From: Tubulanus polymorphus
Taxonomy: Eukaryota; Animalia; Nemertea
DNA length: 64,000 nucleotides
Direction of reading: 5' to 3'
Assembly: GCF_964204645.1 (NCBI RefSeq)
Contig: NC_134033.1
Location: 2,934,131 to 2,998,130, forward strand
Shown here: positions 1-64,000 of the stretch, in pieces
Layout: the number at the start of each line of letters is the position of its first letter
Position numbering within the stretch: the stretch's first letter is position 1
Notes under the pieces: generated by a model
The model's database searches: none
What the model was told of the DNA's origin: nothing
The model's input: the letters and a program-made list of their open reading frames with translations, nothing else
Translations under genes and position numbers: made by a program

Positions 1-1206
1 TCTATATCGGTTCTCGGTGAAAATGTATTTAAAGGTTTATCCGCATTACAGTCGTTAAATATCAGCAGTAACAGAATACATTATATTTCCAGCTATGTTT
101 TTTACGGATTGGTTGGACTTGAAATTCTAGATCTCGTCAACAATTCCGAAGTAATATCCGTACAAAGAAACGTTCTGGGCGATCTTACATCATTGAAATA
201 CCTCGCTTCGGATGCTTACAAATTTTGCTGCATGGCACCGAATGTTGACCGATGTCTTCCCGAAGCTGATCAATTTTCCACCTGTTCTGACCTGATGGGT
301 AACACTGTACTGAGGGCCATCATCTGGATGATCGCATCTTTCAGTTTTCTCGCTAACAGTATCGTTATTGTATTTCGCATTCAAGCTTTGCGGATGGAAT
401 CCACCGGAACACGTAACACATCTTCAGATATCCTCATCATAAACATTGCCGGTTGTGATTTTCTGATGTCGGTCTATTTGTTTTTGATCGCAGGAGCTGA
501 CCACGCATTCAAAGGCGTTTATTATCTGAATTCTGAAACCTGGACGGATAGCTCATTATGTCGTCTCGCCGGGGTTATTGTCACCGTGTCGTGCGAAGGT
601 TCCTTAACTTTCCTCTTAATTCTAACGCGTCAGAGATATTCGAATATCGTCAACCCGTTTTCCAGAAGTCCGATTATAACTCCGAAATACGTTACCGGTA
701 TTTGTTGCATCTGTTGGCTCGTTATAAGCACAGTTTCTATTCTACCGCTGTCATCGTCGTCTTACTTCGGAGACAATTTTTACGGTACAACCGGAGTTTG
801 TTTGCCTATGAATTTACTGACGATCGACGTCAATGGCTGGCACTATTCATTCGCTATTTTTGCCGTGTTTAATCCGGCCATATTGGCTACGATAATGACG
901 ACGTACGCTCAGATGTATAGACTCGTATCTGGGAGTAGGTCGGGTTCGGGTAGAGCCGATCCTACCGAACTGGTTTTAGCACGAAGGAGTTTAGTAATCA
1001 ATCTTTGTAATCTATTTTGCTGGCTACCGATAATAATCGTCCAGTTTTGCGCCGTATTTTCGGTCGAGATACCGAACCAGGTGGCCGCTTGGCTGGCCGT
1101 TCTATTTTTACCGATCAACTCGTCTCTGAATCCGCTTCTTTATACAATACTGACGATCGATATGAAATCAATTAGAACGAGATATAAACGTCAACAAAAG
1201 AAGTAG
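1..1206 (+). CDS. GRL101-like LRR-GPCR, copy A (3' part only: last LRRs, hinge, 7TM; 5' end outside window)
   Basis: Frame is open from base 1 (SISVLGENVFKG...) to TAG at 1204-1206. LRR, hinge SDAYKFCC...DQFSTCSDLM, CWLP (TM6), NSSLNPLLY (TM7). Near-identical to the 3' end of the complete copies. Confidence 0.93.
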   Translation, partial: SISVLGENVFKGLSALQSLNISSNRIHYISSYVFYGLVGLEILDLVNNSEVISVQRNVLGDLTSLKYLASDAYKFCCMAPNVDRCLPEADQFSTCSDLMGNTVLRAIIWMIASFSFLANSIVIVFRIQALRMESTGTRNTSSDILIINIAGCDFLMSVYLFLIAGADHAFKGVYYLNSETWTDSSLCRLAGVIVTVSCEGSLTFLLILTRQRYSNIVNPFSRSPIITPKYVTGICCICWLVISTVSILPLSSSSYFGDNFYGTTGVCLPMNLLTIDVNGWHYSFAIFAVFNPAILATIMTTYAQMYRLVSGSRSGSGRADPTELVLARRSLVINLCNLFCWLPIIIVQFCAVFSVEIPNQVAAWLAVLFLPINSSLNPLLYTILTIDMKSIRTRYKRQQKK

Positions 1207-2199
1207 ATTAAGAACACTTCAATAGCAATAAAGGAGCTTTTAAACGAATCGTTTTAGCGTTCATGGTCGCGCACCAAACTCTAGTAATGAATCTAAAGAA
1301 CAAAGAACAGATATTAACGATGACCTTTGGGCCCGTGGTCCATTCAGTTTTTATATCACTACTTTATCTACACAATTCATATAAATTAATGTTTTTTTCG
1401 TAGCTATTAAATTCATTGTAGATTGTTTGTTGAATGCAATAGTATTTACTTCAGGATGTGGATTTAAGGGGCTCGGTGAGCCCTTTACTGTCCAGTGTAA
1501 TTGAAATAGACGATTACATAGATGACGACGTATTAATCTATGAATGTATTCACTGATGTAGTGTGAGCGTGTGTGTAAGAGTGATTGGTTTGATTTTTCT
1601 TTTAGGGCAGCACGGCTCCGATAGATCTTTGTGATCTCTTCGTGTAGCCCACATTTTCTTGTTACATTTTGTCACTGTATATCATGCGATATCAATAATG
1701 TAATAATGCAACGACCTAATGAAAAATAAACACTATACTACTTTACTAAATGTGCCACCGGATGAAAGTATTTTTCAGCCACCACCGAATCGTATGGTGA
1801 CCGATTCGGGTTAACGAAATTGCCAAGTAAAATAGAGTGCAATATACCTCATGCAAAATATCATAAGCATTGAATATCATGATTGAAATATGCAATTAGA
1901 ATTTTCAATAGAATACGAAGTCAAGTTTACCGCTAAAAAGACTATATATATTCACTATTTTATCTACTTGCTCTTTCCTGGCATGATTAAATCCTTGAAA
2001 AAATCCTTGAAAATCAAATGTTTTATTTCAAGGTCATATTATCAAAGTATCAAAAACTGGTATGCACTTGGGTAATATGATCGCTACCGATGAGACAGAC
2101 TCTCAACGGATATACCACGCAATGATGTGATTTAAACAGAATAATAGTAGATTTATTTCTCTCACAATTTAATCATGTTTTATCAGATTTAATTCCGAA

Positions 2200-2716
2200 A
2201 GTTGACTATTTTCGAGTATATTGGGGCGTTGCTCGCCACAGTTACATTTTCGGTAATCGGGTGATGATTCGAAGCGTTCAGATTCAACAGGTTTAAGGTT
2301 TATGATTATTTGTCCTAGTTTAATTCCGGTCACGATACAGTTGGATTGACAGATACTTTAGTTCATCACGCGTAATCAGTTATCAGAATAGAACACCAAC
2401 TCTCCATCTATCCACTAATTCTGGACGATGAACAATTTGAAATTTGTTTTTTAATGGCTCACAGAATTGAGTCAAAACGTCTCTTGGTTTTTCTTCTAAC
2501 TGTGGGTTTATCAACTAACAGTATGAAGAGTTGGCCTATAGATAATGCTTTGGTACGATCCTCAGGAAATGACGGAAATCGTTTTTCCATATCAACCACT
2601 TTTGAGGGTAGGTGCCGAATGGATGCTCCATCTTTTAGTTTTATGTAGGACCCAGTTTCATTAACTGAATATTTTGGTTTAATCGCTTTCAATGCGGAAA
2701 AAAAATTCAAACTCAA
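2200..2716 (-). mobile_element. Possible decayed LINE ORF2 fragment (also at ~13620-14080, ~48315-48760, and partly 27139-27400, 52170-52500)
   Basis: Minus-strand LKAIKPKYS...KLKDGASI...FPEDRTKA...RRFDSIL loosely follows the pre-RT LK..KS.GPD...LKD....FP..WK.A...YRPISIL pattern. Weak. Confidence 0.4.
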
Positions 2717-3089
2717 CCGCGATTTAAAGTTAGAACTTTTTCATACATCTCTTGCCGTTTTCGTATAAGCAACTGAATTCCTTTAGGTAAGCGAAGTTGT
2801 TATTCAGCCATATGAACTGTTCAAACCCGTCAGTTTTACGGTACCGAGTATCCATTGTATTAAGTACGCTTAATGCGGGTATCAGTTTGTATCCATGGAA
2901 CCACATCGCTTCAAGCGATCACTATTGAAAGGCTGCTGATTGAATGTATCTTATGTCTGGTGTAGTTCATTTTTTCCGGGGTGACCTCTGGTTCAAAAAT
3001 ATATTAGATTTTTAATTTTAGAAATATAACAGATTCAAAGTTCTAAATTCTAACATTCATTTGTTCATAGATTTGATCATAGCAAAAAG

Positions 3090-5313: not shown

Positions 5314-5675
<362 letters not shown>

Positions 5676-5766
5676 CAGTTATTTTCATTCATTGATTCAA
5701 ATCATCAAGAGTGATGAATAGAGGCTGCTTTAACATATCACTCAATTCTAAATATCGTATATATCT

Positions 5767-5892
5767 AAATATCGTCAACCCGTTTTCTAAAAGTCCGATG
5801 ATAACACCGAAATACGTTATCGGTATTTGCTGCATTTATTGGCTCGTTATAAGCACAGTTTCTATTCTACCGCTGTCATCGTCGTCTTACTT
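5767..5892 (+). pseudogene. Orphan fragment of the receptor's own ICL2-TM4 coding sequence upstream of copy B
   Basis: Matches 12069-12194 (NIVNPF...LPLSSSSY) with few substitutions. Confidence 0.9.
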
Positions 5893-6418: not shown

Positions 6419-9400
6419 ATGCAGCGAATGAAAGCGTTGTTCGTAGTTTTACTGATCGCTTGCGAAGACTGTATATTTACGCGGGCTGATCGCGCAAACT
6501 CTGTCCAGGAAGCCGCGTCTGTTACAGTCAGTTCATCTTGTAACAACACTCAATACTCCGTCGATTCTACGTCTGGTTACATCGTTTCACCGAACTATCC
6601 GTCGTTAGTGCGCGGTGTCGAATGTCGTTGGTTCGTCAACAGCTCTTTACCGGGAAGTTTTCTCGTTCAAGTTTACTACGACATCGAGCCGTCGATATTC
6701 TGTAACGAAAACTATCTTGTCGTCGGTGAGTCCGACAACAAACTCTGCGCTACCGGAAGAAAACAACTAGATATCCGCAGTAACGGGTTGATTTCGTTGT
6801 TGTTTAGGAGTAACGTCGATGGAGCGCGAGGTAGTCGGGTTTATATCATATATCGTTTTGAAGAACAGAGTCGCTTGAAAATCTTACATACATGTCACAA
6901 GCATGCAGTAAAAGAATTACCAACTCAAACAGGTTATGAATTTACGATTTCTGTCTGGCGATGTAAATTGTTGTTAGAATGGATCGGGATGCCAGACGGG
7001 TTTGCAATGAATTTAACGTTTATACAGATAGATTTCAGATTATATCCAGGTGAGGATCCGATGAAAACTCGTCCTCAAATTTACGACGGATGGAACAGCA
7101 CCAGTGAACCTATAGCTCTTATACGAGAACAAACCGGACATCCACCTTCATCGTTTTATACTAAAACTAATAAAGCACGTATTGAATTCATTTCAACTAG
7201 ATCTTGGTTTAAGTCGCAGTTACTCGTGCAAGTTTACAAAATATCAGATTGGAACATCTATAACCCGTTAATTCAAGTCTATAATAAATCAGGACTGCTC
7301 ACTACAATTGATGGAATACCACATATAGTAACTCAGTCTAAACACTTATACTGCTGGTCTATCACAGTCGATGTTCTGCAGTACGTCGTCTTCAACTGGA
7401 CACGTGATCTCGTCTCGTCACCAGGTGTCGTTGGTGTATATAAACAGGAAGGGTTACGTATTGTGAGAACTGATATTTTACTCAGTTTTAACTATCTAAA
7501 ATCTCTGAGTGTAAAATCAGACGGATTTCTCGTGATTCTGTGCGTTTTAACGACATCAGATTTTTTAAGATCGAATTTGAAATTAGAATTTGAAGTGAAA
7601 TCGATGACAATATCAGACGTCTACGTCAACAAGCCACGGATATTGGTAAGTTTATTACAGTGATTTGTAAATTAGGTTCGTGTAATAGAATCATTGTAAT
7701 TATCTATGATTTTGATGGCGATTTTGACCAGTGAAACTTTACCGAGAAACTTGGAATAACAACGTTATGTGTGACCCAAATTTCAATATATTCGGACGCA
7801 CATGTTTTGTACCCAGACTAATTATGATGATTTGTGGAAGTTAGGTTTTGATTGCAACATTTTGAACTTTTATCAATATATCGAGGTCGTACAGAGTTTT
7901 AAATTGTTGTATTGTAAACGTTCAATACTGTAATCAATTCTCTTATATTTCAGAATTCTAACACAAAATCAATATCAGCTTATCGATTGTTCCCGAGATC
8001 AAAGAATACATTGTATCGTGTAACTACATTACAACTAAACTGGAAAGTGAACATCTATGAAGAACAGTTAGAACTAACAGTGCTATCAGAAAACTGTGAT
8101 CGAGCTGGTTTTTATATATTTGATGGTAGTAATTTCACAGCTAGACGCTATGGTCCGTATTGTCCTGGTTCATTCTACGGTCGATCTGTCGTCAGTCTGA
8201 TTACATCAGGTGGACCGGTTACTGTAGTAGCATACGCTTATTACTATAACAATCAGTTAACAGTTGGTAGCTCATCTCTTCAATTTGTTCCTACTGATTG
8301 TGACAGGTATGTTCTACAGGAAGAACAACGTCAGATCAATATGACGTCACACTGTCTCGTGATTACACCTGAAAATCGACGCTTTCGCTTGAAAAAAATT
8401 CACACATTATCAGAACACGAATATCAAATTGACCGATGTTTTCTCAAGATGTCATTGCCATGTGATCAGTTTTTGAGTTTGAGTAATCAGTTTCTTAATA
8501 ACAGTCTCGTATTAAACACTGTAGATTTCACAGATAATGGGTTTGGATTCTGGCGGCGACCACTAATAGTTAAACTACGTCGTAAATGTCTAGGAGTTAA
8601 AAAAGCGGATAGTTTGGGACTTGCCGGTTCCCGTCTCCCAGTTACTACTAAAGATAAATGTGGACTCGTGCAGTCACCGAACTATCCAGGTCGGGCAGGA
8701 CGTACATCAAAATCTATTTCATATAGATTTGAAAACCCGATACAACAAAATATATTTCAATATTACAGATTTATTGTCAAATCTATTGGACCAGTTTCAT
8801 GTGAAAAATACAACAATAAAGCGAATGATCCGATTATTCTAATACAACTAATGAATTATAAACCTTTTCATAATGGTGAATATTTCAAAACTATTGACTC
8901 TCAATATGATACTAAAATATGTGATAACAACGCGGTTCGTGGACTTATATTTTATAGTTTAACAGATAATACTTTGCGTTTTGAAGTAAACAATTTCATT
9001 CCGACATTTCAAATACAATACACTTTACACGAGTCGTTACCGATTAAACATTTCGATGATTTCTACTGTAAACAAGGATTTCTGGATTCCGGAATTTCCT
9101 GCATCAGATTCATCAGAGATGAACGTCTGAATTGGGAGAACGCTGAAATATACTGTAGACAGAAGTACGCGGGACATCTACTCAGTATCAACTCAGAACA
9201 GGAAATGATTTCAATCAAAAGATTATTCGCTACAGAACTTCTCCGAATGGCTTATACATTAAAAGCGCTCATAATGATGATTGGATTAAAATGGAAGGTA
9301 AGACTAATGTATTCTAATATGAATTAAAATCGAAAGATTTTTAAAGAAGTGATATATTTCATTTTCTTCACGAAACAGAATGATGGTTATTACACGTGGA

Positions 9401-12400
9401 CTGACGGTAAACCATTGAGCTACACAGAGTGGTATAAACCTGTTATTAATGAAACGATACCAGAAGTTATTCGAGGATTGATATCTCCGCTAAGAAAACA
9501 ACCGATAAATGACGTCAATATGCCGTGTACGGTGATGATACTGAATAATCCACGAGGATCGGCGAACTGGGTTCGATTCCCGTGTCAAATCGAGGAGACG
9601 CACACGACATTCATTTGTGAATCCAAGAGAATCAACATCAAAAACGAACACAATTCAACGATTAACGACGCGAACAATTCAACAAATACAGACTTAAATA
9701 AAACCATAGATCAAATTATTCCCGATATTACTTTGATTAATTCAACCTGTCCAAGAGGTTGGGTAACTATTTCCGGACGATTTTATCAAATACTAACCGA
9801 CTGGAAAAGTAATCGAGGTTTGAATATTCGGAGTGCTAGAGAAATGTGTCACAGTTTCCGCGCCGAAATAGTAAAAATCACCTCAAATACAGAAAGTGAC
9901 GTGAAAAACTTGGTCAGCGAATTTCAATATCGACATCAATATGGCGCTATACTGACAATGGACCGCGACGGATTTAAAGTTATCAAACCATTGGTGACCA
10001 GAAATGAAATTACTTATATTCAATCAGTGAAATGGTTATTGAAACCTTTCGATGATACAAAACATAAAGTTCATTCCGTGTTGTGTACCTTTAATGTAAC
10101 TGGTGAAGAGTTAGCTTCTATAAGCGGCTGTAAATCGTGGCAGTTTGAATGTAACGATCAAAGATGTATCAGCGACCATCGCGTATGTGATACCAGACAC
10201 GACTGTCAACACGGTGAAGATGAACTCGATTGTAGGGATATCAATTTACACAGTCAGTTCCGCTGTAACGATGGACAGGTTATATCGATTAGCGGTTTCT
10301 GCGACTTTATGAGAGATTGCGTCGATGGCTCGGATGAGAACTCGTGCTATCATCCACCGTGTTTATCTACGCGATATCGCTGTTCCAATCACCAATGCAT
10401 CGATAGTTATAAACGATGTGACGGACTAGCCAACTGTAAAGACGGTTCCGATGAAATCGGATGCACTGGCGAACTTTGTCAGGGGTTCTCGTGCGCGGAC
10501 GGTGAATGTATTAGTTTTCAGTTGTATCGGGATGGTGTCGTGGATTGTAGCGGAAGTCTCGAAGAAGACGAATTGGTTACTAATATGACAGTGAATCCCG
10601 AGGTTTACTGTAATGATGACAATCAATGTTCGACTCGTTTCACAGATCTGTGTAAGGAATCGGATGAACAAAGATGTTCGTTCAATTCTCCTCGCTGTTA
10701 TTCCCGACACGAAAGGTGTATTTTAGAAAGGATGCCGATTGGTTTCCCGGTATGTCGAAATCTTGAACATATACTCGCGTGTAGTGACTTCGAATGCGCG
10801 GCTGGTACTGTAAAATGTCCGGCATCTTACTGTATACCGATCAGACACGTTTGTGACGGTCGATCCGATTGTCCTAATTCAGAAGATGAACGAAACTGCG
10901 AGACTTGGTCGTGTCCGGGAATGTTTAAATGTGGCCAGGAAAATCGATGTATTCCGCAATCTGAAGTTTGCGACGGAGTCGTAAATTGTAAACATAACTC
11001 GGATGACGAGTCATACTGTAAGGTCACGTGTCCTGAACGTCGTAATTGCCGGGGTCATTTCATCGATTGTGAAAATGCTCTTTTATCAGATATTACCGGC
11101 CGTTTTATAGAATCAACTCGGGTTTTGATTTTGTCGAATAACCGAGTCGTATTTAACGAGTCGACGTTCAACTCTTTCATTTATCTTCGTTTTCTCGATA
11201 TTTCGGGCAATAATTTGTCTTACATCGTTCAAAACGCGTTTTCTAATCTAAACAATCTATACACATTAGACCTTACTCACAACCGCATAACATCATTATC
11301 TGCTAATACATTCGCAGGTTTGATCGGTTTAAAAGAACTATTTCTTATCGGAAATCCGCTGCAACATTTAGAAGACGGTAGTTTCCGAGGTCTGACGTCA
11401 CTTACTGTTCTCGATCTTCACGGACTTTCTATATCGGTTCTCGGTGAAAATGTATTTAAAGGTTTATCCGCATTACAGTCGTTAAATATCAGCAGTAACA
11501 GAATCCATTACATTTCGACATCTGCTTTTTCTGGATTGGTTCGACTTGAAATTCTAGATCTTGTCAAAAATGCCGAAGTGATATTTGTAAAAAGAAACGT
11601 CATTGGCGATCTTACATCATTGAAATACCTCGCTTCGGATGCTTACAAATTTTGCTGCATGACACCGAATGTTGACCGATGTCTTCCCGAAGCTGATCAA
11701 TTTTCGACCTGCTCTGACCTGATGGGTAACGCTGTACTGAGAGCCATCATCTGGATGATCGCATCTTTCAGTTTTCTCGCTAACAGTATCGTTATTGTAT
11801 TTCGCGTTCAAGCTTTGCGGATGGAATCCCCCGGAACACGTAACACATCTTCAGATATCCTCATCATAAATATTGCCGGTTGTGATTTTCTGATGTCGGT
11901 CTATTTGTTTTTGATCGCAGGAGCTGACCACGCGTTCAAAGGCGTTTATTATCTGAATTCTGAAGCCTGGACGGATAGCTCATTATGTCGTCTCGCCGGG
12001 GTTATTGTCACCGTTTCGTGCGAAGGTTCCTTAACTTTTCTCTTAATTCTAACGCGTCAGAGATATTCAAATATCGTCAACCCGTTTTCTAGAAGTCCGA
12101 TTATAACTCCGAAATACGTTATCGGTATTTGCTGTATTTGTTGGCTCGTTATAAGCACAGTTTCTATTCTACCGCTGTCATCGTCGTCTTACTTCGGAGA
12201 CAATTTTTACGGTACAACCGGAGTTTGTTTGCCTATGAATTTACTGACGATCGAAGTCAATGGCTGGCACTATTCATTCGCTATTTTTGCCTTGTTCAAT
12301 GCGGCCATATTGGCTGCGATAATGACGACGTACGCTCAGATGTATAGACTCGTATCTGGAAGTAGGTCGGGTTCGGGTAGAGCCGATCCTACCGAACTGG

Positions 12401-12633
12401 TTTTAGCTCGAAGGAGTTTAGTAATCAATCTTTGTAATTTATTTTGCTGGCTACCGATAATAATCGTTCAGTTTTGCGCCGTATTTTCGGTCGACATACC
12501 GAACCAGGTGGCCGCTTGGCTGGCCGTTCTATTTTTACCGATCAACTCGTCTCTGAATCCGCTTCTTTATACAATACTAACTATCGATATGAAATCAATT
12601 AGAATGAGATATAAACGTCAACAAAAGAAGTAG
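6419..12633 (+). CDS. GRL101-like giant LGR, copy B: SP-CUB/CUB-like-CTLD x2-LDLa x~7-LRR-7TM, ~1941 aa; exons 6419-7645, 7954-9297, 9379-12633
   Basis: Donor TTG|GTAAGT (7646), acceptor TATTTCAG| (7953), donor AAG|GTAAGA (9298), acceptor AAACAG| (9378). Both introns phase 0 and join the three ORFs in frame. Intron 2 splits a C-type lectin domain (MIGLKWK|NDGYYTWTDG). CUB signature GYIVSPNYP..C.W; LDLa C..CD...DC.DGSDE repeats; LRR; NPLLY. Confidence 0.9.
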
Positions 12634-22600: not shown

Positions 22601-22954
22601 GCTATTTTTGCCTTGTTTAATGCGGCCATATTGGCTACGATAATGACGACGTACGCTCAGATGTATAGACTCGTATCTGGGAGTAGGTCGGGTTCGGGTA
22701 GAGCCGATCCTACCGAACTGGTTTTAGCACGAAGGAGTTTAGTAATCAATCTTTGTAATCTATTTTGCTGGCTACCGATAATAATCGTCCAGTTTTGCGC
22801 CGTATTTTCGGTCGAGATACCGAACCAGGTGGCCGCTTGGCTGGCTGTTCTATTTTTACCGATCAACTCGTCTCTGAATCCGCTTCTTTATACAATACTG
22901 ACGATCGATATGAAATCAATTAGAACGAGATATAAACGTCAACAAAAGAAGTAG
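16699..22954 (+). CDS. GRL101-like giant LGR, copy C, ~1943 aa; exons 16699-17919, 18262-19617, 19700-22954
   Basis: Same architecture and homologous phase-0 splice sites (GTAAGT 17920, AG 18261, GTAAGA 19618, AG 19699). Confidence 0.9.
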
Positions 22955-28100: not shown

Positions 28101-28642
28101 CGGCCCAATTTTTTGCCATTTGAAACGTATGAAAAAGCGGCAGAACCCAAATTATAATTTCGTGTCCAAAAAACCAGTCGTCGAAACGCCCGAGAACAAA
28201 GTCACTTTGTTGGAAATGTATTATGAGTATCCTAAGCGGATAAAGAAGAAACACTGAAAATACGAACAGTAAATCGAACCAGGCAAGAATGATTATAGTT
28301 TGATAAGTGTCGCGACCGATCTTTCTGAATACTAGAATAGAAACAGAGTTAAGAATCATTCCTAAAACTGAAGCCGGCAAATATCCGTACAAGTAAATCT
28401 TATAGCTGAAAACGTGATCCCATCGTTCTGCTGGTAATAGGCTCGGGTGGCAGGGTTTAAGCGTAGTCGTAGTGATTGTGGTAGAATTCATACTGATGCT
28501 TCTATAACCTGTAATCAGTGACTCGCATATAACCTCTATTTATATATATATGTATGTATATAATTCATGCTGAAGCTTCTATAACCTGTTATCAGTGACT
28601 CGTAGTGAGTCGGTTATCAAATCTACTCTACTCTCAACGCAA

Positions 28643-28712
<70 letters not shown>

Positions 28713-47600: not shown

Positions 47601-47836
47601 TGGTTTTAGCTCGAAGGAGTTTAGTAATCAATCTTTGTAATCTATTTTGTTGGCTACCGATAATAATCGTTCAGTTTTGCGCCGTATTTTCGGTCGAGAT
47701 ACCGAACCAGGTGGCCGCTTGGCTGGCCGTTCTATTTTTACCGATCAACTCGTCTCTGAATCCGCTTCTTTATACAATACTAACTATCGATATGAAATCA
47801 ATTAGAACGAGATATAAACGTCAACAAAAGAAGTAG
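41612..47836 (+). CDS. GRL101-like giant LGR, copy E, ~1942 aa; exons 41612-42832, 43146-44498, 44582-47836
   Basis: Homologous phase-0 splice sites (GTAAGT 42833, AG 43145, GTAAGA 44499, AG 44581). Full domain set intact. Confidence 0.9.
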
Positions 47837-49216: not shown

Positions 49217-49247
<31 letters not shown>

Positions 49248-49275
49248 CTCTGCCTCTGCCTCTGCCTCTGCCTCT
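49133..49275. repeat. (CCCCTG/CCTCTG)n hexamer microsatellite
   Basis: Same flanks as 3090-3243. Confidence 0.93.
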
Positions 49276-50156: not shown

Positions 50157-53100
50157 ATGGAAAGCGATAAAAGGCGTGTAATCCGCGAATTCCGGAACGC
50201 CATCAAACGTAACGACCTCGGCCTCGTCAAGAAAACGCGCGACGAATTCTTCAAACTCGAGCGAGGATCGGATTTGATCGATTCGGATCTAACCGTAAAT
50301 CTAACCGATGATTCTAGCGTCGTCGTTCCCGAGCGGCGCTACCCGGACGAGATAGCCGACGAGTCGGTGGTTTCGAACCCGCTGTTTCTGGCTTGTATTT
50401 TCTGCAGCGCGGATGTCGTCTGGTATCTCATCGCCGAGGGAGCAGACGTGCTGGTCAAGGACGTTAACGGTAACAACGTCGTTCACGCGCTGGTCTCGGC
50501 GGCGGCCGCGTGCCCGCGTCTCGAGTCAAAACTCGTCGAAATCTACCGTCTCGTAAACCGCCAAATATCGCCGAATATGGCAGTTCTACTGACGGACGAG
50601 AATAAACTAGAACTTCGACCGTTAGAGTTCGCCGCCCGCGTGGGGACGTTCGGTTTGTTTTCGGTTATTTTGAACACGGAGGGCGTCTACCGCACGATGA
50701 CCGCCGATCACGGCATGAAGGTCGTATACTCGTACGATCTCGGGGTTTACGATGCGGACGGCGATCGTTACGATAAATCACCGCACTGGTTTTTCGTCTT
50801 GAACGACGCCGATTCGGTGCTGGAGAAGATGCACGCCAGCGCCTGTTTGAAGAACCCGTCGATCGAGGCCTGGTCGAAGCTGATTTGGGCTAGGAGTAAA
50901 TACGTGCACTGTCTGGGAAGCGCTTTTAGATTGTGTATTTTCATGCTGTTCATGTTGATGCCGCACGTCAGGTTTTACGAATATCAGGAACACATTTCAG
51001 CGGATCTCAACAACACAGGTAAACAAGAAAACTAATATGAAAGTTTAGACGCATTTAGAAATAACACATATATTGCGTTATATTTTCGACAATGAAAAAC
51101 GTGATATAAAGTTAGCTAGTATTTAGGATCAATAAAGTAATTTTGGATTTAAAAAAAAAATCGATAATCGAATTGACCGGTAACCAGTCCAGTCGCGATA
51201 TATTGATGACGTTATACAGCTTCTACTGGCGCACTAGAGGTCATCTCTTCCTCGTTGGCGTACCGTAGCTATTGCAGAACAGAATACAGTGGAATAAGTT
51301 TACTTTATTTGTCTACATTGCCGAAACGATAGTATTAAGAAGTTAATAGCGATAGTAAATATAGCTGCAAGGCAGCGATAACGGATTTTCTGCACAGCCT
51401 TGTTCGTATTATATATATACTAGTTTATTTTCAGGAGAAATTATAACAGATATAAATATGAATAAAGAGTCGACAAGATGTTATAATATCTAGTGAAGGA
51501 TAGCCCAATAGAAAGCAAGAATGCTTGTTTGGAGCATTGTGCCACCTTAAAACACACACAAACACACTTCATTCATTCCCCTCGCATACAGATTCATACA
51601 AAAAATAACATTAGATCAAAGGCGGATGGATGTCAAATGTAACAATTACAAGCAGATTACAATCAACAAATAAACTAGTTTCATGATTGATAGTTGTCTA
51701 TGGTCCACTTTTTAAATCAAGATTTCGTTGCATCGATCGAAGTTGAGAGTTTGATGTGTTGGTTTAGATTTTGCCATTTCAATATTGGAATTAGGCGCGT
51801 ATTCTTGTTGTTGTACCGTGTTGACCACGATAGCGCGTACGCTGACGCATCCGCACCATATCATTGAAAATGAAGGGAATTTAGAATCCTGTTCAACGGT
51901 CAACACGGTTTTATAAAAGGAAGGACTACAAACAGTCAATCTGGCCTACTTTAAACCATGGGTGAATAGAACAGATGCTTTGACCCTGGAAAATCGACAG
52001 ATAGGCCTATAGTATTTATGGATTATGAAATAGCATTTGATAAGGTACTACAGCAGCGATTACTAAACAAGCTATTAAGAAAATCATCATTGTCCAGTGT
52101 GGGTAGACATGTCACATTTTGAGGGAAAATTATTATACTTCTTTTCACGGGATTCTAGTTCGTATTCAAAAGTTGACTATATTCGAGTTTATTGGGTCGT
52201 TGCCAATATCATTCCGGTTATGATTCCTGTCGGCGACGTCTAACTTTTTACGCACAAAGATACGATGTAACTCGCCACAGTTACATTTTCGGTCATCGGT
52301 TCATCTATCCACTAATTCTGGACGATGAACAATTTGAATTTTTTTTTTCTTAAATGGCTCATAGAATTGAGTCGTCAAAACGTCTCTTAGTTTTTCTTCT
52401 TACTATGGGTGGGTTTATCAACTAACAGTTTGCAGAGTTAGGCTATAGATAATATTGCTTCGGTCCGATCCTTTCAGGAAATGACAGAAATTGTTTTTTC
52501 CAGATGCTATTTAGAATCAAACAGATAGTTTATCAGTAAAATCTGTTTAACTGTTTTTCTAAAGGCGCCGTTTGTCGCGCAGTAGACGAAAAAATTAGCG
52601 GAAGAGTCTAAAACGCTGAGCAGAATCCCTGCTTTACGCATGACCATTAGTTCATCCACAGATAGACCGTGGAGTAGTCCGAAATGCGTTTTGAAGAAAT
52701 ACAGCAGACGGTCCAGCGATGCGGGAATTTCACAGATAAAGAATATAGCTACAATTATGAGAACGACTTTTAATATTTTGAGTTCGGTAGATTTTCCACC
52801 GGGCGCCGCTGCGTCCGCGTGAAATTGTTTTTTTCGATTTAGTTTTCTAGATATCATAATTCCGAACAAAGTTAAGTTTATCACGATAAGAGTGGTAAAA
52901 GGTAAAAGAACAGTCATGAACATATAGGAATTAATAACGTCACGTCGTGCATTATCAAGCAAATAAACAAAAGGTGTCGGTATTGTACTCGCGCCGAAAG
53001 CGCCCATTGTATAAACACGTTCGTAACAGCGTTGCGTGCCCCTACCGGGTAAACTTAGCGGAAAATAATACGGCCAGAAACAAACAGCGGAAGATATTGC

Positions 53101-53654
53101 GTTCAAAACTGAAAGACAAATGATTTGTTTTTTGTTCCAGAATCGTTTAAAATACAGCGGACTCGCGACGACCAGAAGTCTCTCGAAATTGATTACGACT
53201 ACGGCCCAATTTTTTGCCATTTGAAACGTATGAAAAAGCGGCAGAACCCAAATTATAATTTCGTGTCCAAAAAACCAGTCGTCGAAACGCCCGAGAACAA
53301 AGTCACTTTGTTGGAAATGTATTATGAGTATCCTAAGCGGATAAAGAAGAAACACTGAAAATACGAACAGTAAATCAAACCAGGCAAGAATGATTATAGT
53401 TTGATACGTGGAGCGACCGATCTTTCTGAATACTAGAATAGAAACAGAGTTTAGAATCATTCCTAAAACTGAAGCCGGCAAATATCCGTACAAGTAAATC
53501 TTATAGCTGAAAACGTGATCCCATCGTTCTGCTGGTAATAGGCTCGGGTGGCAGGGTTTAAGCGTAGTCGTAGTGATTGTGGTAGAATTCATACTGATGC
53601 TTCTATAACCTGTAATCAGTGACTCGTAGTGAGTCGGTTATCAAATATATACAA

Positions 53655-53710
<56 letters not shown>

Positions 53711-54750
53711 TTGTATATATTTGATAACCGATCTTTTTGCAAATCGAAGTTAGCGTTAATTATGATATCTAAACAGCTCGTAAGAGCCTATGGTTAAACC
53801 GTGTCAATTATGACCGTACCTAATTAACTATCCGAAACTCGAGAATCCTATCTTCACATCTCTCAAATCGCAACCACAATTCGCATACGTTCATTTACAT
53901 ATATTCAAATTTTATATCGATTTTTTTCTCTGCAGATTACTGCATGGCGAATAAGTCATACATACCGATGCCGCGACCGGTTCGAGTATGCATGCGTGCG
54001 TCCGCTTACGCCGTCAGCTTGATAGTTGTATTGAAGATACTGGCCTACGTCGCCCTCATCATCGCCGCGCTTAAACGCAGGCTCGTACTGAAATTCATCT
54101 TACGAAATACGTTCGGTCAACTTCTCCACGATTCGATTCTGGTGACGATCATGCTAGCAAACGCCGTCTACACCAAGAATCAAGTGCCCTACGAGTTCAG
54201 CTGGATGTACCTGTTTTTCACGCCGGTTTTTCTCAGCAACGTCTGCGCGTTTTTTCAAATATTTCCCTCGTTCGGTTTCTACTTCATGAGCTTGCAAAAG
54301 ATGTTGCAAGCTCTGGCGAGGTTTTCCTTCATATTCGCGGTGGTTTTCATGATCTACTGCACGTGTCTATCGTCGTTGCTGGTGAACGCGAACGTCTGCG
54401 GATGGTCCAGCTGGAAAGTGATCTACGGCACGTTTCTGAGCATGATTAACATGGCGGACTACGCGCAAATATCGTCGGATCGCCACAAGTTGGTGTTGTT
54501 CCAGGTTTACCATATGGAAATGGTTTTCATCGTGGCCATCGTGATGTTGAACTTTCTGATAGCGATTATGACCGGCGTGCACTCGAAACACGACGAGCTG
54601 AAGGAGACGATTTCGACGGTGACGCGCATGCGCCTGAATACGATGGCGCTCGTGCACGTGGTACAGTGGCGGCGTATGCTGCGTATGAAACCGTTGAACC
54701 TCGGTCTCGGCGATATACGAGTTGTCGTCAACGCGGCGGACGAAATGTGA
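50157..54750 (+). CDS. TRPV-like ankyrin-repeat cation channel, copy 2, ~558 aa; exons 50157-51018, 53936-54750
   Basis: Near-identical duplicate of copy 1, same exon lengths (862 + 815 nt) and splice sites (51019, 53935). Confidence 0.85.
51915..52085 (+). mobile_element. CR1-like LINE RT fragment in TRPV intron (copy 2)
   Basis: IVFMDYEIAFDKVLQQRLLNKL; duplicate of 26885-27060. Confidence 0.7.
52507..53592 (-). CDS. Intronless rhodopsin-family GPCR (FMRFamide/sex-peptide-receptor-like orphan), nested in TRPV intron, copy 2
   Basis: 361 aa; differs from copy 1 by three residues in the ORF track (D>S, S>G, I>T). Confidence 0.9.
   Translation of the reverse strand: MNSTTITTTTLKPCHPSLLPAERWDHVFSYKIYLYGYLPASVLGMILNSVSILVFRKIGRSTYQTIIILAWFDLLFVFSVFLLYPLRILIIHFQQSDFVLGRFDDWFFGHEIIIWVLPLFHTFQMAKNWAVVVINFERLLVVASPLYFKRFWNKKQIICLSVLNAISSAVCFWPYYFPLSLPGRGTQRCYERVYTMGAFGASTIPTPFVYLLDNARRDVINSYMFMTVLLPFTTLIVINLTLFGIMISRKLNRKKQFHADAAAPGGKSTELKILKVVLIIVAIFFICEIPASLDRLLYFFKTHFGLLHGLSVDELMVMRKAGILLSVLDSSANFFVYCATNGAFRKTVKQILLINYLFDSK
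53634..53731. repeat. Perfect 98-bp palindrome centred on (AT)n
   Basis: TCGGTTATCAAATATATACAAGC-(AT)n-GCTTGTATATATTTGATAACCGA. Confidence 0.93.
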
Positions 54751-56643: not shown

Positions 56644-57734
56644 TTACAGCATATTCGAATCACAAAAATAATTCATCAGTAAAATCTGTTTAGCTTTTTT
56701 TCTAAAGGCGCCGTTTGTCGCGCAGTAAAGGAAGAAATTTACGGAAGAATCTAAAACACTGAGCAGAATTCCTACTTTACGCATGATCATTAGTTGAGCC
56801 GTAAATAGGCCGTTAGGTATCCAAACTCCTTTCTGAAGTAACCTAGCAGACGGTCCAGTGATGCGGGAATTTCACAGATAAAAAATATAGCTACAATTAT
56901 GAGAACCAATTTTAATATTTTGAGTTCGGTGGATTTTTCACCGGGCGCCGCCGCGTCCGCGTGAAATTGTTTCTTTCGATTTAGTTTTCTAAATATCATA
57001 ATTCCGAACAAAGTTATATTGATCACAATTAGAAAAATAAAAGGTGCAAGAATAGTCATGAACAAATAGGAATTAGAAACAAAGCTGGATGCTCGATTAC
57101 TTTTATAAATAAAAGGTGTTCGAATTATTTTCGCTCCAAAAGGTCCCATTGTAAATAAACCTTCAAAACAGCGTCGCGTAGCCCTTCCGGGTAAACGTTT
57201 TGGAAAATAATACGGCCAGAAACAAACGGCGGAAGAAATTGCGTTCAAAACCGAGAAAAAGATGATTTGTTTTTTGTTCCAGAATCGTTTGAAATACAGC
57301 GGACTCGCGACGACCAGAAGTCTTTCAAAATTGATTATAACTACGGCCCAATTTCTGGACATGTGGAACGTGTGAAACAGCGGTAGAACCCAAATTATAA
57401 TTTCGTGTCCAAAAAACCAATCATCGTAATGGCCAAAGAACACAGCATCTATTTGACCAGAGATAATTATTATCCGAAGTGGATACAGAAGAAACACTGA
57501 AAATACGAACAGTAAATCAAACCAGGCGAGAACTATGATAGTTTGATAAATAGCGCGACCGATCTTTCTGAATACTAGAATGGAAACGAAGTTTAGAAAC
57601 ATTCCGAAAACTGAAGCCGGCAAATATCCGTACAAGTACAGATTATAGCTGAAAACGTGTGTCCATTGTTCTGGTGGGAATCGGCTGGCGAGGCAGCGCT
57701 CAATTTTAGTCGTGGAGATTGTGGTAGAATTCAT
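56644..57734 (-). pseudogene. Third, more divergent paralogue of the nested GPCR with a 1-nt frameshift at ~56818 (recent pseudogene or sequencing error)
   Basis: ORF 57734-56790 ends before TM7. Restoring one base after ...KEFG gives PNGLFTAQLMIMRKVGILLSVLDSSVNFFLYCATNGAFRKKAKQILLMNYFCDSNML* with stop at 56644-56646. Confidence 0.8.
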
Positions 57735-57906: not shown

Positions 57907-58319
<413 letters not shown>

Positions 58320-58679: not shown

Positions 58680-59506
58680 CTAGCGACACCCGCTGGATCC
58701 TCACTTGCCACAAGTGGAATTTTCTTGCCGCAGTAGTTGATGTCCTACTGCACACTAGCGACACCTGGTGGATCCTCACTTTCCACAAGTGGAATTTTCT
58801 TGCCGCAGTAGTTGATGTCCTACTGCACACTAGCGACACCCGCTGGATCCTCACTTGCCACAAGTGGAATTTTCTTGCCGCAGTAGTTGATGTCCTACTG
58901 CACACTAGCGACACCTGGTGGATCCTCACTTTCCACAAGTGGAATCCTCTATTGTCGCAGTAGTTGATGTCCTACTGCACACTAGCGACACCTGGTGGAT
59001 CCTCACTTTCCACAAGTGGAATCCTCTATTGTCGCAGTAGTTGATGTCCTACTGCACACTAGCGACACCTGGTGGATCCTCACTTTCCACAAGTGGAATC
59101 CTCTATTGTCACAGTAGTTGATGTCCTACTGCACACTAGCGACACGTGGTGGATCCTCACTTTCCACAAGTGGAATCCTCTATTGTCGCAGTAGTTGATG
59201 TCCTACTGCACACTAGCGACACGTGGTGGATCCTCACTTTCCACAAGTGGAATCCTCTATTGTCGCAGTAGTTGATGTCCTACTGCACACTAGCGACACG
59301 TGGTGGATCCTCACTTGCCACAGGTGGAATTTTCTTGCCGCAGTAGTTGATGTCCTACTGCACACTAGCGACACGTGGTGGATCTTCACTTTCCACAAGT
59401 GGAATCCTCTATTGTCGCAGTAGTTGATGTCCTACTGCACACTAGCGACACGTGGTGGATCCTCACTTGCCACAGGTGGAATTTTCTTGCCGCAGTAGTT
59501 GATGTC
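58680..59506. repeat. Minisatellite, ~11 units of 75 or 77 bp
   Basis: Units start (CTAGCGACAC) at 58680, 58755, 58830, 58905, 58982, 59059, 59136, 59213, 59290, 59365, 59442. Confidence 0.95.
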
Positions 59507-61939: not shown

Positions 61940-62311
61940 CTTATATATATTTTAGATTTAATGAATAAATTCTTGTTTTTAAAATCTTTTAATCTGTAGA
62001 TAGTGGGTTTTTATCTTATTATCCGTTCATCACGTTTAAGTGCGGTTATCGTTCTAATGGAGTCTTTTTCGCGACAGGTTAACAAGACTTCATCACAGCT
62101 GCCTCTCTGCTAGATTGGACTAATCTAAATTGAGTCAAATTAAACGTTTTTAAATGATGATCAGAAGTTTCGGAATTATCAATTCACCTCATTTATTATT
62201 GGTTGGAATTTCGTCGCGTTCACACTACGAAGCAGTTAGACCATTCTAAACGGGTCCGGGTCAGGAACGGGACAAATTTAGAACGGATCGAATCAGAGTG
62301 CGCGAGTGAGA

Positions 62312-62401
62312 TTCTCGCCGGGGTTATTGCAACAGTTTCCTAACTAAAGATTCCTAACATTTCTCTGTTTCTATTCTACAACTGTCATCCCCGTCTTACT
62401 T
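62312..62401 (+). pseudogene. Internally deleted TM3/TM4 fragment upstream of copy F
   Basis: Same deleted form as upstream of copy D, same 3' junction. Confidence 0.75.
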
Positions 62402-62933
62402 GGTTGCTGTTGTTTCTTCAAAACAATCTGTACCAAACAAGACCTATTACTCACCACAATCAGATATCAATGCGCTTCACTTAGATTCAACTCAGTTATT
62501 GTATTGACTGTAGAGTGTGAATTATCAAAACAGATGTTGACGAAGTGTTTTACAGAGACGCAGAATATTTTGAGGTAAAGATAGAAAATGTCATAGAATA
62601 TTATCACAAACTGAACGCAGTTCGGGAGCGACAGGTAAATATTTTTAGAGAAATAATTGCACATAATTATAAACACGATATATTGAAACACGTTTAGATT
62701 TAGAAACCGCGGTAATTACAGCGAAACCGAGAACAGATGAAAGTTTCACAAATACGAGTCTGGCGCCAGTTTGATGGGAGAACTTTTACAAAATAATTGG
62801 ACTCTGGACCAATTCGTCAACTTCTGACATTTGCGAATTCGTCATTACTTTACAGCGACTCTTTTGAGAAATGTCGTGCGAACTTAGAAATAGTTAGAAA
62901 AGTGTTTGTTTTGAAGCGTGAATTGTGTTCAAT

Positions 62934-64000
62934 ATGCAGCGAATGAAAGCGTTGTTCGTAGTTTTACTGATCGCTTGCGGAGACTGTATATTTACGCGGG
63001 CTGATCGCGCAAACTCTGTCGAGGAAGCCGCGTCTGTTACGGTCAGTTCATCTTGTAACAACACTCAATTCTCCGTCGATTCTACGTCTGGTTACATCGT
63101 TTCACCGAACTATCCGTCGTTAGTGCGCGGTGTTGAATGTCGTTGGTTCGTCAACAGCTCTTTACCGGGAAGTTTTCTCGTTCAAGTTTACTACGATATC
63201 GAGCCGTCGATATTCTGTAACGAAAACTACCTTCTCGTCGGTGAGTCCGAAAACAAACTCTGCGCTACCGGAAAAAAACGACTAGATATCCGCAGTAACG
63301 ATTTGAATTCGTTGTTGTTTAGGAGTAACGTCGATGGAGCGCGAGGTAGTCGGGTTTATATCATATATCGTTTTGAAGAACAGAGTCGCTTGAAAATCTT
63401 ACACACATGCTACAAACGTGCAGTAAAAGAATTACCAACTCAAACAGGTTATGAATTCAGGATTTCTACCCGGCGATGTAAATTGTTGTTAGAATGGATC
63501 GGGATGCCAGACGGGTTTGCAATGAATTTTACGTTTATACAGATAGATTTTAGATTAAGACCAGGTGAGGATCCGATGAAAACTCGTCCTCAAATTCACG
63601 ACGGATGGAACAGCGCCAGTGAACCTATAGCTCTTATACGAGAACAAACCGGACATCCGCCTTCATCGTTTTATACTAAAACTAATAAAGCACGTATTGA
63701 ATTCATTTCAAGTACAGAGTGGTTTAAGTCACAGTTACTCGTGCAAGTTTACAAAATATCAGATTGGAACATCTCTAACCCGTTAATTCAAGTCTACAAT
63801 AAATCAGGACTGCTCGCTACAATTGATGGAATACCACATATAGTAACTCAGTCTAAACACTTATACTGCTGGTCTATCACAGTCGATGTTCTGCAGTACG
63901 TCGTCTTCAACTGGTCACGTGATCTCGTCTCGTCACCAGGTGTCGTTGGTGTATATACACGGGAAGGGTTACGTATTGTGAGAACTGATATTTTACTCAG
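62934..64000 (+). CDS. GRL101-like giant LGR, copy F (exon 1, runs off the window end)
   Basis: ATG CAG CGA ATG AAA GCG at 62934, colinear with exon 1 of the other copies (signal peptide, CUB). Missing from the ORF track because no stop is reached. Confidence 0.9.
   Translation, partial: MQRMKALFVVLLIACGDCIFTRADRANSVEEAASVTVSSSCNNTQFSVDSTSGYIVSPNYPSLVRGVECRWFVNSSLPGSFLVQVYYDIEPSIFCNENYLLVGESENKLCATGKKRLDIRSNDLNSLLFRSNVDGARGSRVYIIYRFEEQSRLKILHTCYKRAVKELPTQTGYEFRISTRRCKLLLEWIGMPDGFAMNFTFIQIDFRLRPGEDPMKTRPQIHDGWNSASEPIALIREQTGHPPSSFYTKTNKARIEFISSTEWFKSQLLVQVYKISDWNISNPLIQVYNKSGLLATIDGIPHIVTQSKHLYCWSITVDVLQYVVFNWSRDLVSSPGVVGVYTREGLRIVRTDILL

Follow-up and report, generated by a model that had tools for sequence, protein, structure and literature searches.

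The window analysed here, a 64-kb stretch of contig C9 of Tubulanus polymorphus (2.93-3.00 Mb), forms part of a larger tandem receptor array. Self-BLASTN of the window recovered six LGR paralogues (A-F), all on one strand and 91-96% identical in nucleotide sequence, together with two copies of a cassette in which a TRPV-like channel gene holds a class-A GPCR gene within its intron (Table 1). The order along the window is A-B-C-[TRPV+GPCR]-D-E-[TRPV+GPCR]-GPCR(psi)-F; this order, and the number and shared orientation of the paralogues, agree with a preliminary description of the locus. Copy A, whose gene starts upstream of the window, is 95-98% identical to the remaining LGR copies at the nucleotide level and retains a clear 7TM domain (Pfam 7tm_1, E 2.7e-23). 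Copy D has lost ~126 aa through an in-frame deletion, which deprives the second CUB of its C-terminal half and CTLD1 of its N-terminal half, and its C-terminal tail is unlike that of the other copies. No further gene-like open reading frame of at least 110 aa was found in the 64-kb window.

Table 1. Features of the 64-kb window (positions are those of the window)
Feature	Position	Strand	Details
LGR copy A, repeat match	1-1206	+	3' end only; self-BLASTN
LGR copy A, exon 3 3' part	1..1206	+	7TM and tail; open to stop codon
TM3-TM4 relic of LGR coding sequence	5730..5892	+	5' edge of copy B unit
LGR copy B, repeat match	5724-13034	+	self-BLASTN
LGR copy B, exon 1	6419..7645	+	signal peptide, CUB1 aa 41-148, ~260 aa orphan all-beta
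LGR copy B, exon 2	7954..9297	+	orphan beta region, second CUB fold aa 217-362, CTLD1 N-terminal half aa 370-430
LGR copy B, exon 3	9379..12633	+	CTLD1 C-terminal half, CTLD2-like, LDLa, LRRs, 7TM, stop codon; exons 1-3 sum to 1941 codons
LGR copy C, repeat match	16026-23314	+	self-BLASTN
LGR copy C	16699..22954	+	exons 16699-17919, 18262-19617, 19700-22954; 1943 codons
TRP+GPCR cassette, two copies	24184-29826 and 49217-54852		self-BLASTN
TRPV-like channel copy 1	25141..29728	+	exon a 25141-26002, exon b 28914-29728; 558 codons
Nested class-A GPCR copy 1	27406..28491	-	intact, intronless, 361 aa; antisense in TRPV-like intron
LGR copy D, repeat match	32171-38596	+	self-BLASTN
LGR copy D	32738..38644	+	exons 32738-33955, 34320-35294, 35375-38644; 1820 codons
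LGR copy E, repeat match	40880-48232	+	self-BLASTN
LGR copy E	41612..47836	+	exons 41612-42832, 43146-44498, 44582-47836; 1942 codons
TRPV-like channel copy 2	50157..54750	+	exon a 50157-51018, exon b 53936-54750; 558 codons; splice sites as copy 1
Nested GPCR copy 2	52507..53592	-	99% aa identity to copy 1
Third GPCR, nested-GPCR family	56653..57734	-	76% aa identity; frameshift near codon 306, TM7 out of frame; probable pseudogene
LGR copy F, repeat match	62367-64000	+	5' end only; self-BLASTN
LGR copy F, exon 1 from its ATG	62934..64000	+	runs past window end

Each LGR gene is predicted to encode one receptor of ~1,940 aa from three coding exons (~1,941 aa in the model) separated by two phase-0 GT-AG introns. 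In the four window copies B, C, D and E, the two introns occupy homologous positions, are in phase 0 and are bounded by GTAAG...(Y)nCAG, and internal stops are absent from every exon. These conserved splice sites, the shared phase and the stop-free exons support the earlier proposal that the three open reading frames per copy would be fused by splicing. Intron 2 interrupts CTLD1, so that a complete domain can arise only if exon 2 is spliced to exon 3. The same three stop-free exons, in unchanged order, were found in 17 sampled paralogues (44-94% aa identity). When the 12 most divergent sampled paralogues (contigs C6, C8 and C12) were scanned crudely, exons 1 and 2 almost always ended in phase-0 donors, but acceptors were seen at only about half of the junctions.

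The predicted protein comprises, in order, a signal peptide, a CUB domain, an orphan all-beta region, a second CUB fold, two weak CTLD-like domains, ~5-7 LDLa modules, LRRs and a rhodopsin-type 7TM. Exon 3 encodes LDLa in five stretches (Pfam Ldl_recept_a, E 3.2e-33; one or two additional degenerate modules can be discerned by eye in the translation), LRRs directly before the 7TM (Pfam LRR_8, E 1.4e-29, three stretches, exon 3 aa 590-745) and the 7TM itself (Pfam 7tm_1, E 6.7e-23, 81.9 bits against a cut-off of 30.5), in which the CWLP and NPLLY motifs are intact and DRY is replaced by QRY. N-terminal to the LDLa stack the ectodomain extends for ~1,100 aa. The CUB of exon 1 (aa 48-107) scores 23.7 bits in Pfam against a cut-off of 21.4, and its profile is matched by 17 of 21 paralogues (best E 2.6e-7). 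The second CUB fold, at aa 217-362 of exon 2, was recognized by structure (VIA Z 10.2-7.5), all 20 of the 20 best matches being CUB structures. The preliminary description had claimed one clear and up to four degenerate CUB domains; the clear CUB and this second fold stand, and the others remain leads from a language model, for which profile-profile comparison (hhalign) found nothing. The CTLD-like parts are weak yet consistent across searches. The N-terminal half of CTLD1 gave a profile match in 19 of 20 paralogues (best E 0.0011) and phmmer matches at E 2e-8, the C-terminal half, searched as a separate exon part, matched C-type lectin weakly, and CTLD2 gave only weak matches to NKG2D and the mannose receptor (E 0.05-0.2). 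AlphaFold predictions for exons 1 and 2 are poor (mean pLDDT 38 and 43), ~650 aa of the ectodomain are without a confident fold, and no relative of exon 2 aa 1-370 was detectable among 1.84 billion representative proteins.

Among the ranked database matches, the best named entries, 28-34% identical, come from crustaceans, insects, a tardigrade, a hemichordate and Aplysia and are GRL101 or GRL101-like proteins; these matches and the domain order suggest that the window genes belong, as predicted, with the GRL101-like (type C2 LGR-like) orphan GPCRs. Both the proposed GRL101/type C LGR identity and the proposed addition of CUB and CTLD-like domains to such a receptor are thus upheld, by the best named matches and the Pfam LDLa-LRR-7TM order in the one case and by Pfam, fold and weak CTLD matches in the other. 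GRL101 of Lymnaea stagnalis and the type C2 LGRs are orphan receptors with many LDLa modules, LRRs and a rhodopsin-type 7TM; to our knowledge, none of the GRL101-type receptors has been matched to a ligand. The Tubulanus proteins share with them the succession of several LDLa modules, an LRR domain and a class-A 7TM, but differ in an N-terminal extension of ~1,100 residues (with two or more CUB folds, a pair of CTLD-like domains and orphan beta sequence), in QRY for DRY and in the low sequence identity given above.

Much of this architecture has been described in molluscs. The SudRes2 region of Biomphalaria sudanica contains 12 CTL-LDL-LRR-GPCR GRL101-like genes in 440 kb (PMC12297450), and resembles the Tubulanus array in the CTLD-like domain N-terminal to LDLa-LRR-7TM, the tandem paralogues and the interspersed other genes. 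Its proteins, however, are described without CUB, it lies in a schistosome-resistance region whereas no phenotype is linked to the Tubulanus family, and the latter is more than 10 times larger and spread over several chromosome-scale contigs. GRL101 genes of apple snails (Ampullariidae) have undergone a tandem, lineage-specific expansion to 29-132 genes per species (PMC6573481), likewise by tandem duplication but independently and in a different phylum, the Tubulanus count being larger (at least 171, perhaps ~375). A CUB upstream of LDLa-LRR-7TM is found in Aplysia californica GRL101 (P0016) and in a metagenomic protein (P0008), each with one Pfam-detectable CUB; in P0008 a CTLD-like stretch follows the CUB, and its single giant open reading frame recalls the very large Tubulanus exons. 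Beyond the CUB and CTLD motifs, neither protein has significant similarity to exons 1 and 2.

The window is not a special locus, a reading that we rejected because the genome contains no fewer than 171 places with exon 1, arranged in arrays that occupy five or more contigs. These places divide into 66 of C9/C22/C8 type and 105 of C6/C12 type, and almost all are stop-free; a few copies bear stops or are truncated. The first-look candidates for exon 1 number 375-381, and several places score identically in pairs, so that recent segmental or assembly duplications are possible and the copy count may be inflated. The annotated T. polymorphus gene LOC141911221 (P0001) maps to C9 at 2.81 Mb. The TM3-TM4 relic listed for copy B recurs at 16026-16190 and 40880-41050, is shortened before D and F, and is 89-95% identical in nucleotide sequence to 12031-12194, 22391-22515, 38059-38190 and 47234-47397. 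It marks an old junction at the 5' edge of each unit, and the family grew by unequal crossing-over of ~10 kb units and higher-order blocks.

Among the window copies dS is 0.03-0.17. The LDLa-LRR-7TM part is under purifying selection (dN/dS ~0.2-0.3; 0.19-0.37 for exon 3), and the CUB/CTLD ectodomain evolves faster (0.5-0.8), with no alignment window in which dN/dS convincingly exceeds 1. Ectodomain variation is patchy and falls on the second CUB and CTLD2. As synonymous divergence is also high in these patches, the pattern points to mosaic gene conversion more than to straightforward positive selection.

The channel gene of the cassette has a single phase-1 intron (GT at 26003, AG at 28913 in copy 1), and its family is mostly intronless in the T. 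polymorphus genome. Single exons gave weak matches only, and Pfam Ion_trans was detected in one paralogue only. A profile of the channel family, window exons included, matched TRPV3/5/6/4/2 over its positions 108-560, which run from the ankyrin repeats into S6 (E 1e-22 to 1e-17), and every channel among the matches was a TRPV; the proposed TRPV identity can be retained as TRPV-like. The S6 motif of TRPV channels is LNMLIALM, which the nemertean LNFLIAxMT resembles. The nemertean profile aligns with vertebrate TRPV3/4/5/6 from the ankyrin-repeat domain through S6, but the nemertean protein is short (558 aa). Intact copies have dN/dS of 0.06-0.36 (only 4-10 substitutions each), which argues that the channel gene is probably functional and makes a local functional link conceivable. 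The frameshift of the third GPCR is also present in the copy at C9 2.84 Mb (L007).

We consider the window to be a slice of a lineage-specific tandem expansion in the palaeonemertean T. polymorphus, with the cassette as a passenger, and give this reading as a whole a probability of about 80%. The preliminary description had instead proposed a receptor-plus-transduction-channel locus, in which LGRs, channel and nested GPCR would stay linked through joint action in common sensory cells, the channel serving as transduction output; the nematode channels OSM-9/OCR-2 are the model for such an output. The claimed co-duplication is real, since the cassette is duplicated in the window and all 10 of its genomic copies lie inside the C9/C22 array, oriented as the LGRs. 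The nearest channel paralogues elsewhere are only 26-37% identical, intact channel copies have low dN/dS, and all three reading frames are intact in both window cassettes. Such linkage is expected of every gene trapped in a growing array, however, and 10 cassettes stand against at least 171 LGRs, with none in or near the C6, C8 or C12 arrays. In five of the 10 copies the first channel exon has in-frame stops. Among the readable cassettes only the two of the window have an intact nested GPCR; it is deleted from two otherwise intact cassettes (L004, L005) and broken in two more (L007, L008), the L006 cassette being partly covered, and its small GPCR family has more than 1,000 first-look candidates across the genome. 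This distribution and decay match the passive hitch-hiking that the preliminary description had named as counting against its proposal. We regard a functional receptor-channel module as improbable; more probably the cassette is a passenger that was duplicated together with some of the higher-order blocks.

Two further readings concern the receptors themselves. The array could be largely dead or artefactual, with young undecayed duplicates, uncollapsed haplotypes or assembly duplications and few functional genes, as the domain-breaking deletion in copy D, the few truncated or stop-bearing copies, the identically scoring pairs and the possible haplotig C22 (139 kb) might indicate. Yet at the dS observed all window exons are open and exon 3 is constrained, and tandem copies 4-9% apart in one contig are unlike haplotigs. 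The C6/C8/C12 subfamilies, moreover, keep three stop-free, full-length exons at 44-79% protein identity, which requires long-term purifying selection, so that we think this reading very improbable. Alternatively, the CUB/CTLD ectodomains may recognize pathogen or parasite molecules, with copies diversifying in host-parasite conflict, as proposed for Biomphalaria SudRes2. CTLD and CUB are common recognition modules of invertebrate immunity, and the fast, patchily variable ectodomain would fit such a role, as would the 12 related genes in a schistosome-resistance region (PMC12297450). The validated Biomphalaria variant, however, is in a neighbouring Zn-RING-IAP gene and not in a GRL101 gene (PMC12297450), the T. 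polymorphus copies give no dN/dS above 1, and GRL101-type receptors are known from sensory organs in three independent reports: from apple-snail tentacles and labial palps, read as environmental sensing (PMC6573481), specifically in the tentacles of Charonia (PMC13403566) and in the sensory tentacles of starfish (PMC6267866). An immune repertoire is therefore possible but not likely.

Under the expansion reading, the array family would be a recognition repertoire, in which variable CUB/CTLD modules may bind diverse extracellular ligands, e.g. glycans or proteins, and the signal may pass via LDLa/LRR to the 7TM and G protein. We infer that a chemosensory or environmental role, to which we give slightly better than even odds, is more likely than an immune one. 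A bolder version, which we hold to be a long shot, is that ~375 LGR genes of ~1,940 aa occupy more than 1% of the genome as the largest known LGR-type family, that their ectodomains form a combinatorial repertoire kept mosaic by gene conversion, and that the C9 subfamily recruited its own TRPV-like output channel. If true, the worm would possess a receptor system for macromolecules or glycans, alongside the class-A chemoreceptors for small molecules. With the architecture largely described already in molluscs, as CTL-LDL-LRR-GPCR in Biomphalaria, CUB-LDLa-LRR-7TM in Aplysia and tandem GRL101 genes in apple snails, the Tubulanus array represents a new, very large nemertean case of a receptor expansion known from snails.

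We have found that the window holds six same-strand copies of a giant GRL101-like (type C2 LGR-like) receptor gene, here called LGR copies A to F, in units of ~7.3 kb spaced at ~10 kb and 91-96% identical in DNA by self-comparison of the window. The same comparison confirmed the gene order proposed in the preliminary description. Beyond the LGR, channel and GPCR genes, the window contains no gene-like ORF of at least 110 aa. Each repeat unit opens with a 125-164 nt coding relic of TM3-TM4, ~0.5-0.7 kb upstream of the ATG and 89-95% identical to exon 3, which is most likely the original duplication junction, with its breakpoint within exon 3. The relic is shortened in D and F, the units that come next after a cassette, a cassette being a TRPV-like channel gene (exons a and b) whose intron harbours an antisense class A GPCR. 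A perfect (CAG)120 microsatellite lies ~750 bp upstream of the copy B start codon, and TRF reported no (CAG)n upstream of other LGR copies. An (AT)n tract of ~190 repeats is also present, and a 77-nt unit is arrayed in tandem (~11 copies, 94% matches) in the stretch that separates copy F from the GPCR pseudogene.

Features of the window and related loci (window positions unless a contig is named; C9 is the contig of the window, and C2, C5, C11 and C22 are other contigs of the genome)
Feature	Position	Remark
LGR copy A	1-1206	3' end only
LGR copy B	5724-13034	
LGR copy C	16026-23314	
LGR copy D	32171-38596	
LGR copy E	40880-48232	
LGR copy F	62367-64000	5' end only
Variable patch, copy B exon 2 aa 200-340	~8550-8970	
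Variable patch, copy B exon 3 aa 90-210	~9650-10010	
TM3-TM4 relics	5730-5892, 16026-16190, 40880-41050	
Cassette, two copies	24184-29826 and 49217-54852	~5.6 kb; 90-99% identity
Channel ORFs	24994-26019 + 28922-29728	
GPCR-bearing intron segment	26410-28722	2.3 kb
Third small GPCR	56653-57734	
(CAG)120 microsatellite	5314-5675	
(AT)n tract	57907-58282	
77-nt tandem array	58679-59506	
LGR copies matching exon 1 aa 1-300 only	C9:4074688, 4030190, 3091117, 3032548; C22:132427	
Dispersed TRPV-like genes (examples L001-L003)	C11 5.81 Mb, C2 29.38 Mb, C5 3.30 Mb	
LINE-like element on metagenome contig L026	11306-14434	

Every complete LGR copy contains three long open frames separated by two phase 0 introns. 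In junction alignments, donors (G/GTAAGTT and AAG/GTAAGAC, the slash marking the junction) and acceptors (TCTCTTATATTTCAG/ and CACGAAACAG/) are conserved at homologous positions. The summed exons amount to 1941 (B), 1943 (C), 1820 (D) and 1942 (E) codons and contain no stops; frames and lengths were checked arithmetically, and all searches were performed exon by exon. Four points, all drawn from sequence, support a single transcript of exons 1-3. Exon 1 has a start that reads like a signal peptide. Intron 2 interrupts CTLD1, so that exon 2 closes with the N-terminal half of the domain and exon 3 starts with its WTDG...FICE half. The three-exon order is kept in 17 sampled paralogues from other arrays (44-94% protein identity), all of which are full length and stop-free, one with a frameshift in exon 3. 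Finally, when the 12 sampled paralogues that diverge most (contigs C6, C8 and C12) were scanned crudely for splice sites, almost every exon 1 and exon 2 was seen to end at a phase 0 GTAAGT or GTGAGT donor, with acceptors at only about half of the junctions. Copy D is probably defective despite its open frame; it has lost ~126 codons in frame, which brings the midpoint of the second CUB up against the last part of the N-terminal half of CTLD1, and it has a C-terminal tail unlike that of the other copies. A search with the 1,114-aa exon-3 ORF under a length ceiling of 1,949 aa returned no full-length RefSeq model of the LGR, a result that carries little weight. Some C9-type copies match only aa 1-300 of exon 1 and have 304-aa open frames, which may represent a recurrent shorter variant or a shared truncation.

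Three features define Lymnaea GRL101 and the type C2 LGRs: multiple LDLa modules, LRRs and a class A 7TM domain. The Tubulanus receptor has all three, and the GRL101/type C2 LGR-like identity was borne out by Pfam matches in exon 3 to LDLa (E 3e-33, five stretches, with 1-2 further degenerate modules by eye), LRR_8 (E 1e-29) and 7tm_1 (E 7e-23). In the 7TM domain QRY replaces DRY, and CWLP and NPLLY are present. A CUB in exon 1 scored 23.7 bits against a Pfam cut-off of 21.4 and was seen in 17 of 21 paralogues (best E 2.6e-7). AlphaFold2 models built on alignments of 20-21 paralogues had a mean pLDDT of 38 for exon 1 and 43 for exon 2, and their only usable part was exon 2 aa 217-362 (pLDDT 60-73). 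When this segment was compared with VIA, the best 20 matches were all CUBs (Z 10.2-7.5, rmsd 2.3-3.8 Å, ~105 residues aligned); as modelled, it is a second CUB that is invisible to Pfam. Of 20 paralogues, 19 show the N-terminal half of CTLD1 (best E 0.0011). In a phmmer search of exon 2 against 1.84 billion representative proteins, this half alone gave matches (E 2e-8 and weaker), the rest of the exon having none. The C-terminal half of CTLD1 and CTLD2 match only CTLD proteins (mannose receptor, CD23, NKG2D), weakly (E 0.05-0.2). A remainder of ~650 aa (exon 1 aa 150-409 and exon 2 aa 1-215) is predicted by AlphaFold2, at low confidence, to be all beta; it has no sequence relatives and no profile-profile similarity to CUBs. 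Its nearest language-model clusters are CUB families for both the exon 1 and exon 2 parts (0.95 and 0.92), and a CUB-like nature is at most a lead. The architecture claimed in the preliminary description therefore stands in outline, with at least two CUBs supported and two CTLDs plausible; its other "degenerate CUBs" are unproven, and an internal CUB repeat series had no sequence support from hhalign among six putative ectodomain modules, where the sole match (D1-D6) was weak (probability 28%, 15 columns).

The window is a small part of a very large family in Tubulanus polymorphus, a palaeonemertean. With copy B exon 1 as the query, a genome-wide search gave 381 first-look candidates. Of these, 102 were scored, all with E <1e-160; at 76-95% identity there were 66 places, on C9 (2.27-5.03 Mb), C22 and C8, and at 62-68% a further 36, on C6 and C12. 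The annotated gene LOC141911221 maps within the same C9 array, at 2.81 Mb. A C6-type exon 1 gave 375 candidates, and the 105 scored lie on C6 (17.9-22.1 Mb), C12 (3.7-8.4 Mb), C10, C11, C4, C32 and C9 at 13.2 Mb; stops are present in only 8 of these 105. The union of both searches is at least 171 places. The true copy number may be near 375, in which case, at ~10 kb per unit, the family would occupy more than 1% of the 268-Mb genome. Identical protein scores occur in pairs at fixed offsets of ~232 kb on C6 (19.8-20.1 Mb) and ~308 kb on C9 (2.83 and 3.14 Mb), which points to large segmental duplications of very recent date or to duplication in the assembly. Among the matches of the searches run there were no annotated nemertean relatives besides Tubulanus. 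The closest foreign matches, the LGR P0002 and the CUB-...-LDLa-LRR-7TM protein P0008, are on short metagenome contigs with uninformative neighbours. The P0002 contig also bears a reverse-transcriptase/endonuclease (LINE-like) element, which marks it as eukaryotic within a metagenome assembly.

Among copies B, C, D and E, dN/dS was 0.53-0.85 in exon 1, 0.46-0.61 in exon 2 and 0.19-0.37 in exon 3, with the lowest value (0.21) in the 7TM domain. Sliding windows over nine C9-type copies located three patches of high dN: exon 1 aa 240-270, exon 2 aa 200-340 at the second CUB, and exon 3 aa 90-210 around CTLD2. In these patches dS is also high, 0.3-0.9 versus 0.03-0.1 elsewhere, giving ratios of 0.3-0.8. 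This pattern suggests a mosaic in which gene conversion homogenises the scaffold and the patches retain older divergence; plain positive selection fits it less well. No robust sliding window exceeded 1, those above 1 having near-zero dS, and positive selection was not supported.

Elsewhere in the genome lie intronless paralogues (~600-680 aa) to which the channel ORFs align over their full length. A canonical phase 1 intron (CAG/GTAAAC ... TTTTTTTCTCTGCAG/A) links the two ORFs into a frame, checked arithmetically, of 558 codons in both window cassettes. Single exons gave weak matches only; a profile of the family matched TRPV3/5/6/4/2 from the ankyrin repeats to S6 (E 1e-22 to 1e-17), with no other channel types among its matches, and on this sequence similarity the name "TRPV-like" is justified. 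At least 20 dispersed intronless TRPV-like genes of ~600-680 aa are 26-37% identical to the cassette channel. The nested antisense gene is an intact class A GPCR of 361 aa (7tm_1 27 bits, below cut-off). A genome-wide search for its family gave more than 1,000 first-look candidates, and the nearest relatives of the nested gene (76-81%) are on C9 just outside the LGR array. This is consistent with the large lineage-specific class A expansions published in nemerteans (PMC11886862). The third GPCR has a frameshift before TM7 that is identical in a copy at C9 2.84 Mb, and so is a pseudogene older than that duplication. A dN/dS figure computed across the three window GPCRs was set aside, as this frameshift puts their alignment out of register.

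The preliminary description read channel and receptor as a co-duplicated receptor-plus-transduction-channel locus. Co-duplication of channel and GPCR with the array held. All 10 copies of the cassette channel lineage lie inside the C9/C22 LGR array, in the same orientation as the LGRs. The module itself was not borne out. A genome search found no cassette channel near the C6, C8 and C12 arrays, 5 of the 10 channel copies have in-frame stops in exon a, and the GPCR is lost or broken in the four cassettes that could be read outside the window. Cassettes at C9 3.83 and 3.99 Mb, otherwise intact, have an intron of ~960 nt without the GPCR-bearing segment; the 4.43 Mb cassette has a GPCR with an internal deletion and stops, and the one at 2.83 Mb combines a frameshifted GPCR with two stops in the channel. 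Of the cassettes read, only the two in the window have all three frames intact. Intact channel copies have a dN/dS of 0.06-0.36, on very few substitutions, and the channel is probably a working gene. A local functional link between channel and LGR is possible, and the distribution and decay of the cassettes gave no sign that the LGRs need the channel. The simplest reading is that channel and GPCR are passengers: a resident TRPV-like gene would already have had a GPCR in its intron, would have been amplified inside higher-order blocks of one subfamily's array, and would now be decaying in most copies.

Elements of this system are on record elsewhere. A C-type-lectin domain is added at the N-terminal side in the 12-gene SudRes2 cluster of Biomphalaria (PMC12297450), and proteins of Elysia and Bulinus have one as well. 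CUBs at the N-terminal side are on record for Aplysia GRL101 and for P0008, a single giant ORF in which a CTLD-like stretch follows the CUB. In apple snails, GRL101-annotated genes have expanded in tandem to 29-132 per species and are expressed in tentacle and labial palp (PMC6573481), and GRL101 is expressed in the sensory tentacles of Charonia (PMC13403566) and crown-of-thorns starfish (PMC6267866). A nemertean neuropeptide-receptor survey explicitly omitted LGRs (PMC8557429), and a lophotrochozoan class A study left LGR, LDL and leucine-rich receptors unmentioned (PMC11886862). Our literature search returned no paper joining LGR, CUB, C-type lectin and LDLa. The Tubulanus expansion is undescribed, independent and unusually large; its principle is already known from molluscs, and it is not a new type of system.

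The TRPV-like channel and its nested GPCR offer a clean case of genes amplified, then decaying, as passengers of an expanding array. Class A chemoreceptor surveys that skip LRR-containing GPCRs miss a large share of the receptor repertoire. GRL101-type receptors are orphans, and they recur in molluscs and echinoderms in clusters that are expanded, tandem, expressed in sensory organs or linked to resistance; the nemertean array is evidence for independent expansion outside molluscs. With at least 171 giant receptor genes, the family has a scale that, like its orphan ectodomain, merits a proper census and expression study, and these largely intact copies, in several diverged subfamilies, constitute a natural series of ectodomain variants for finding ligands.
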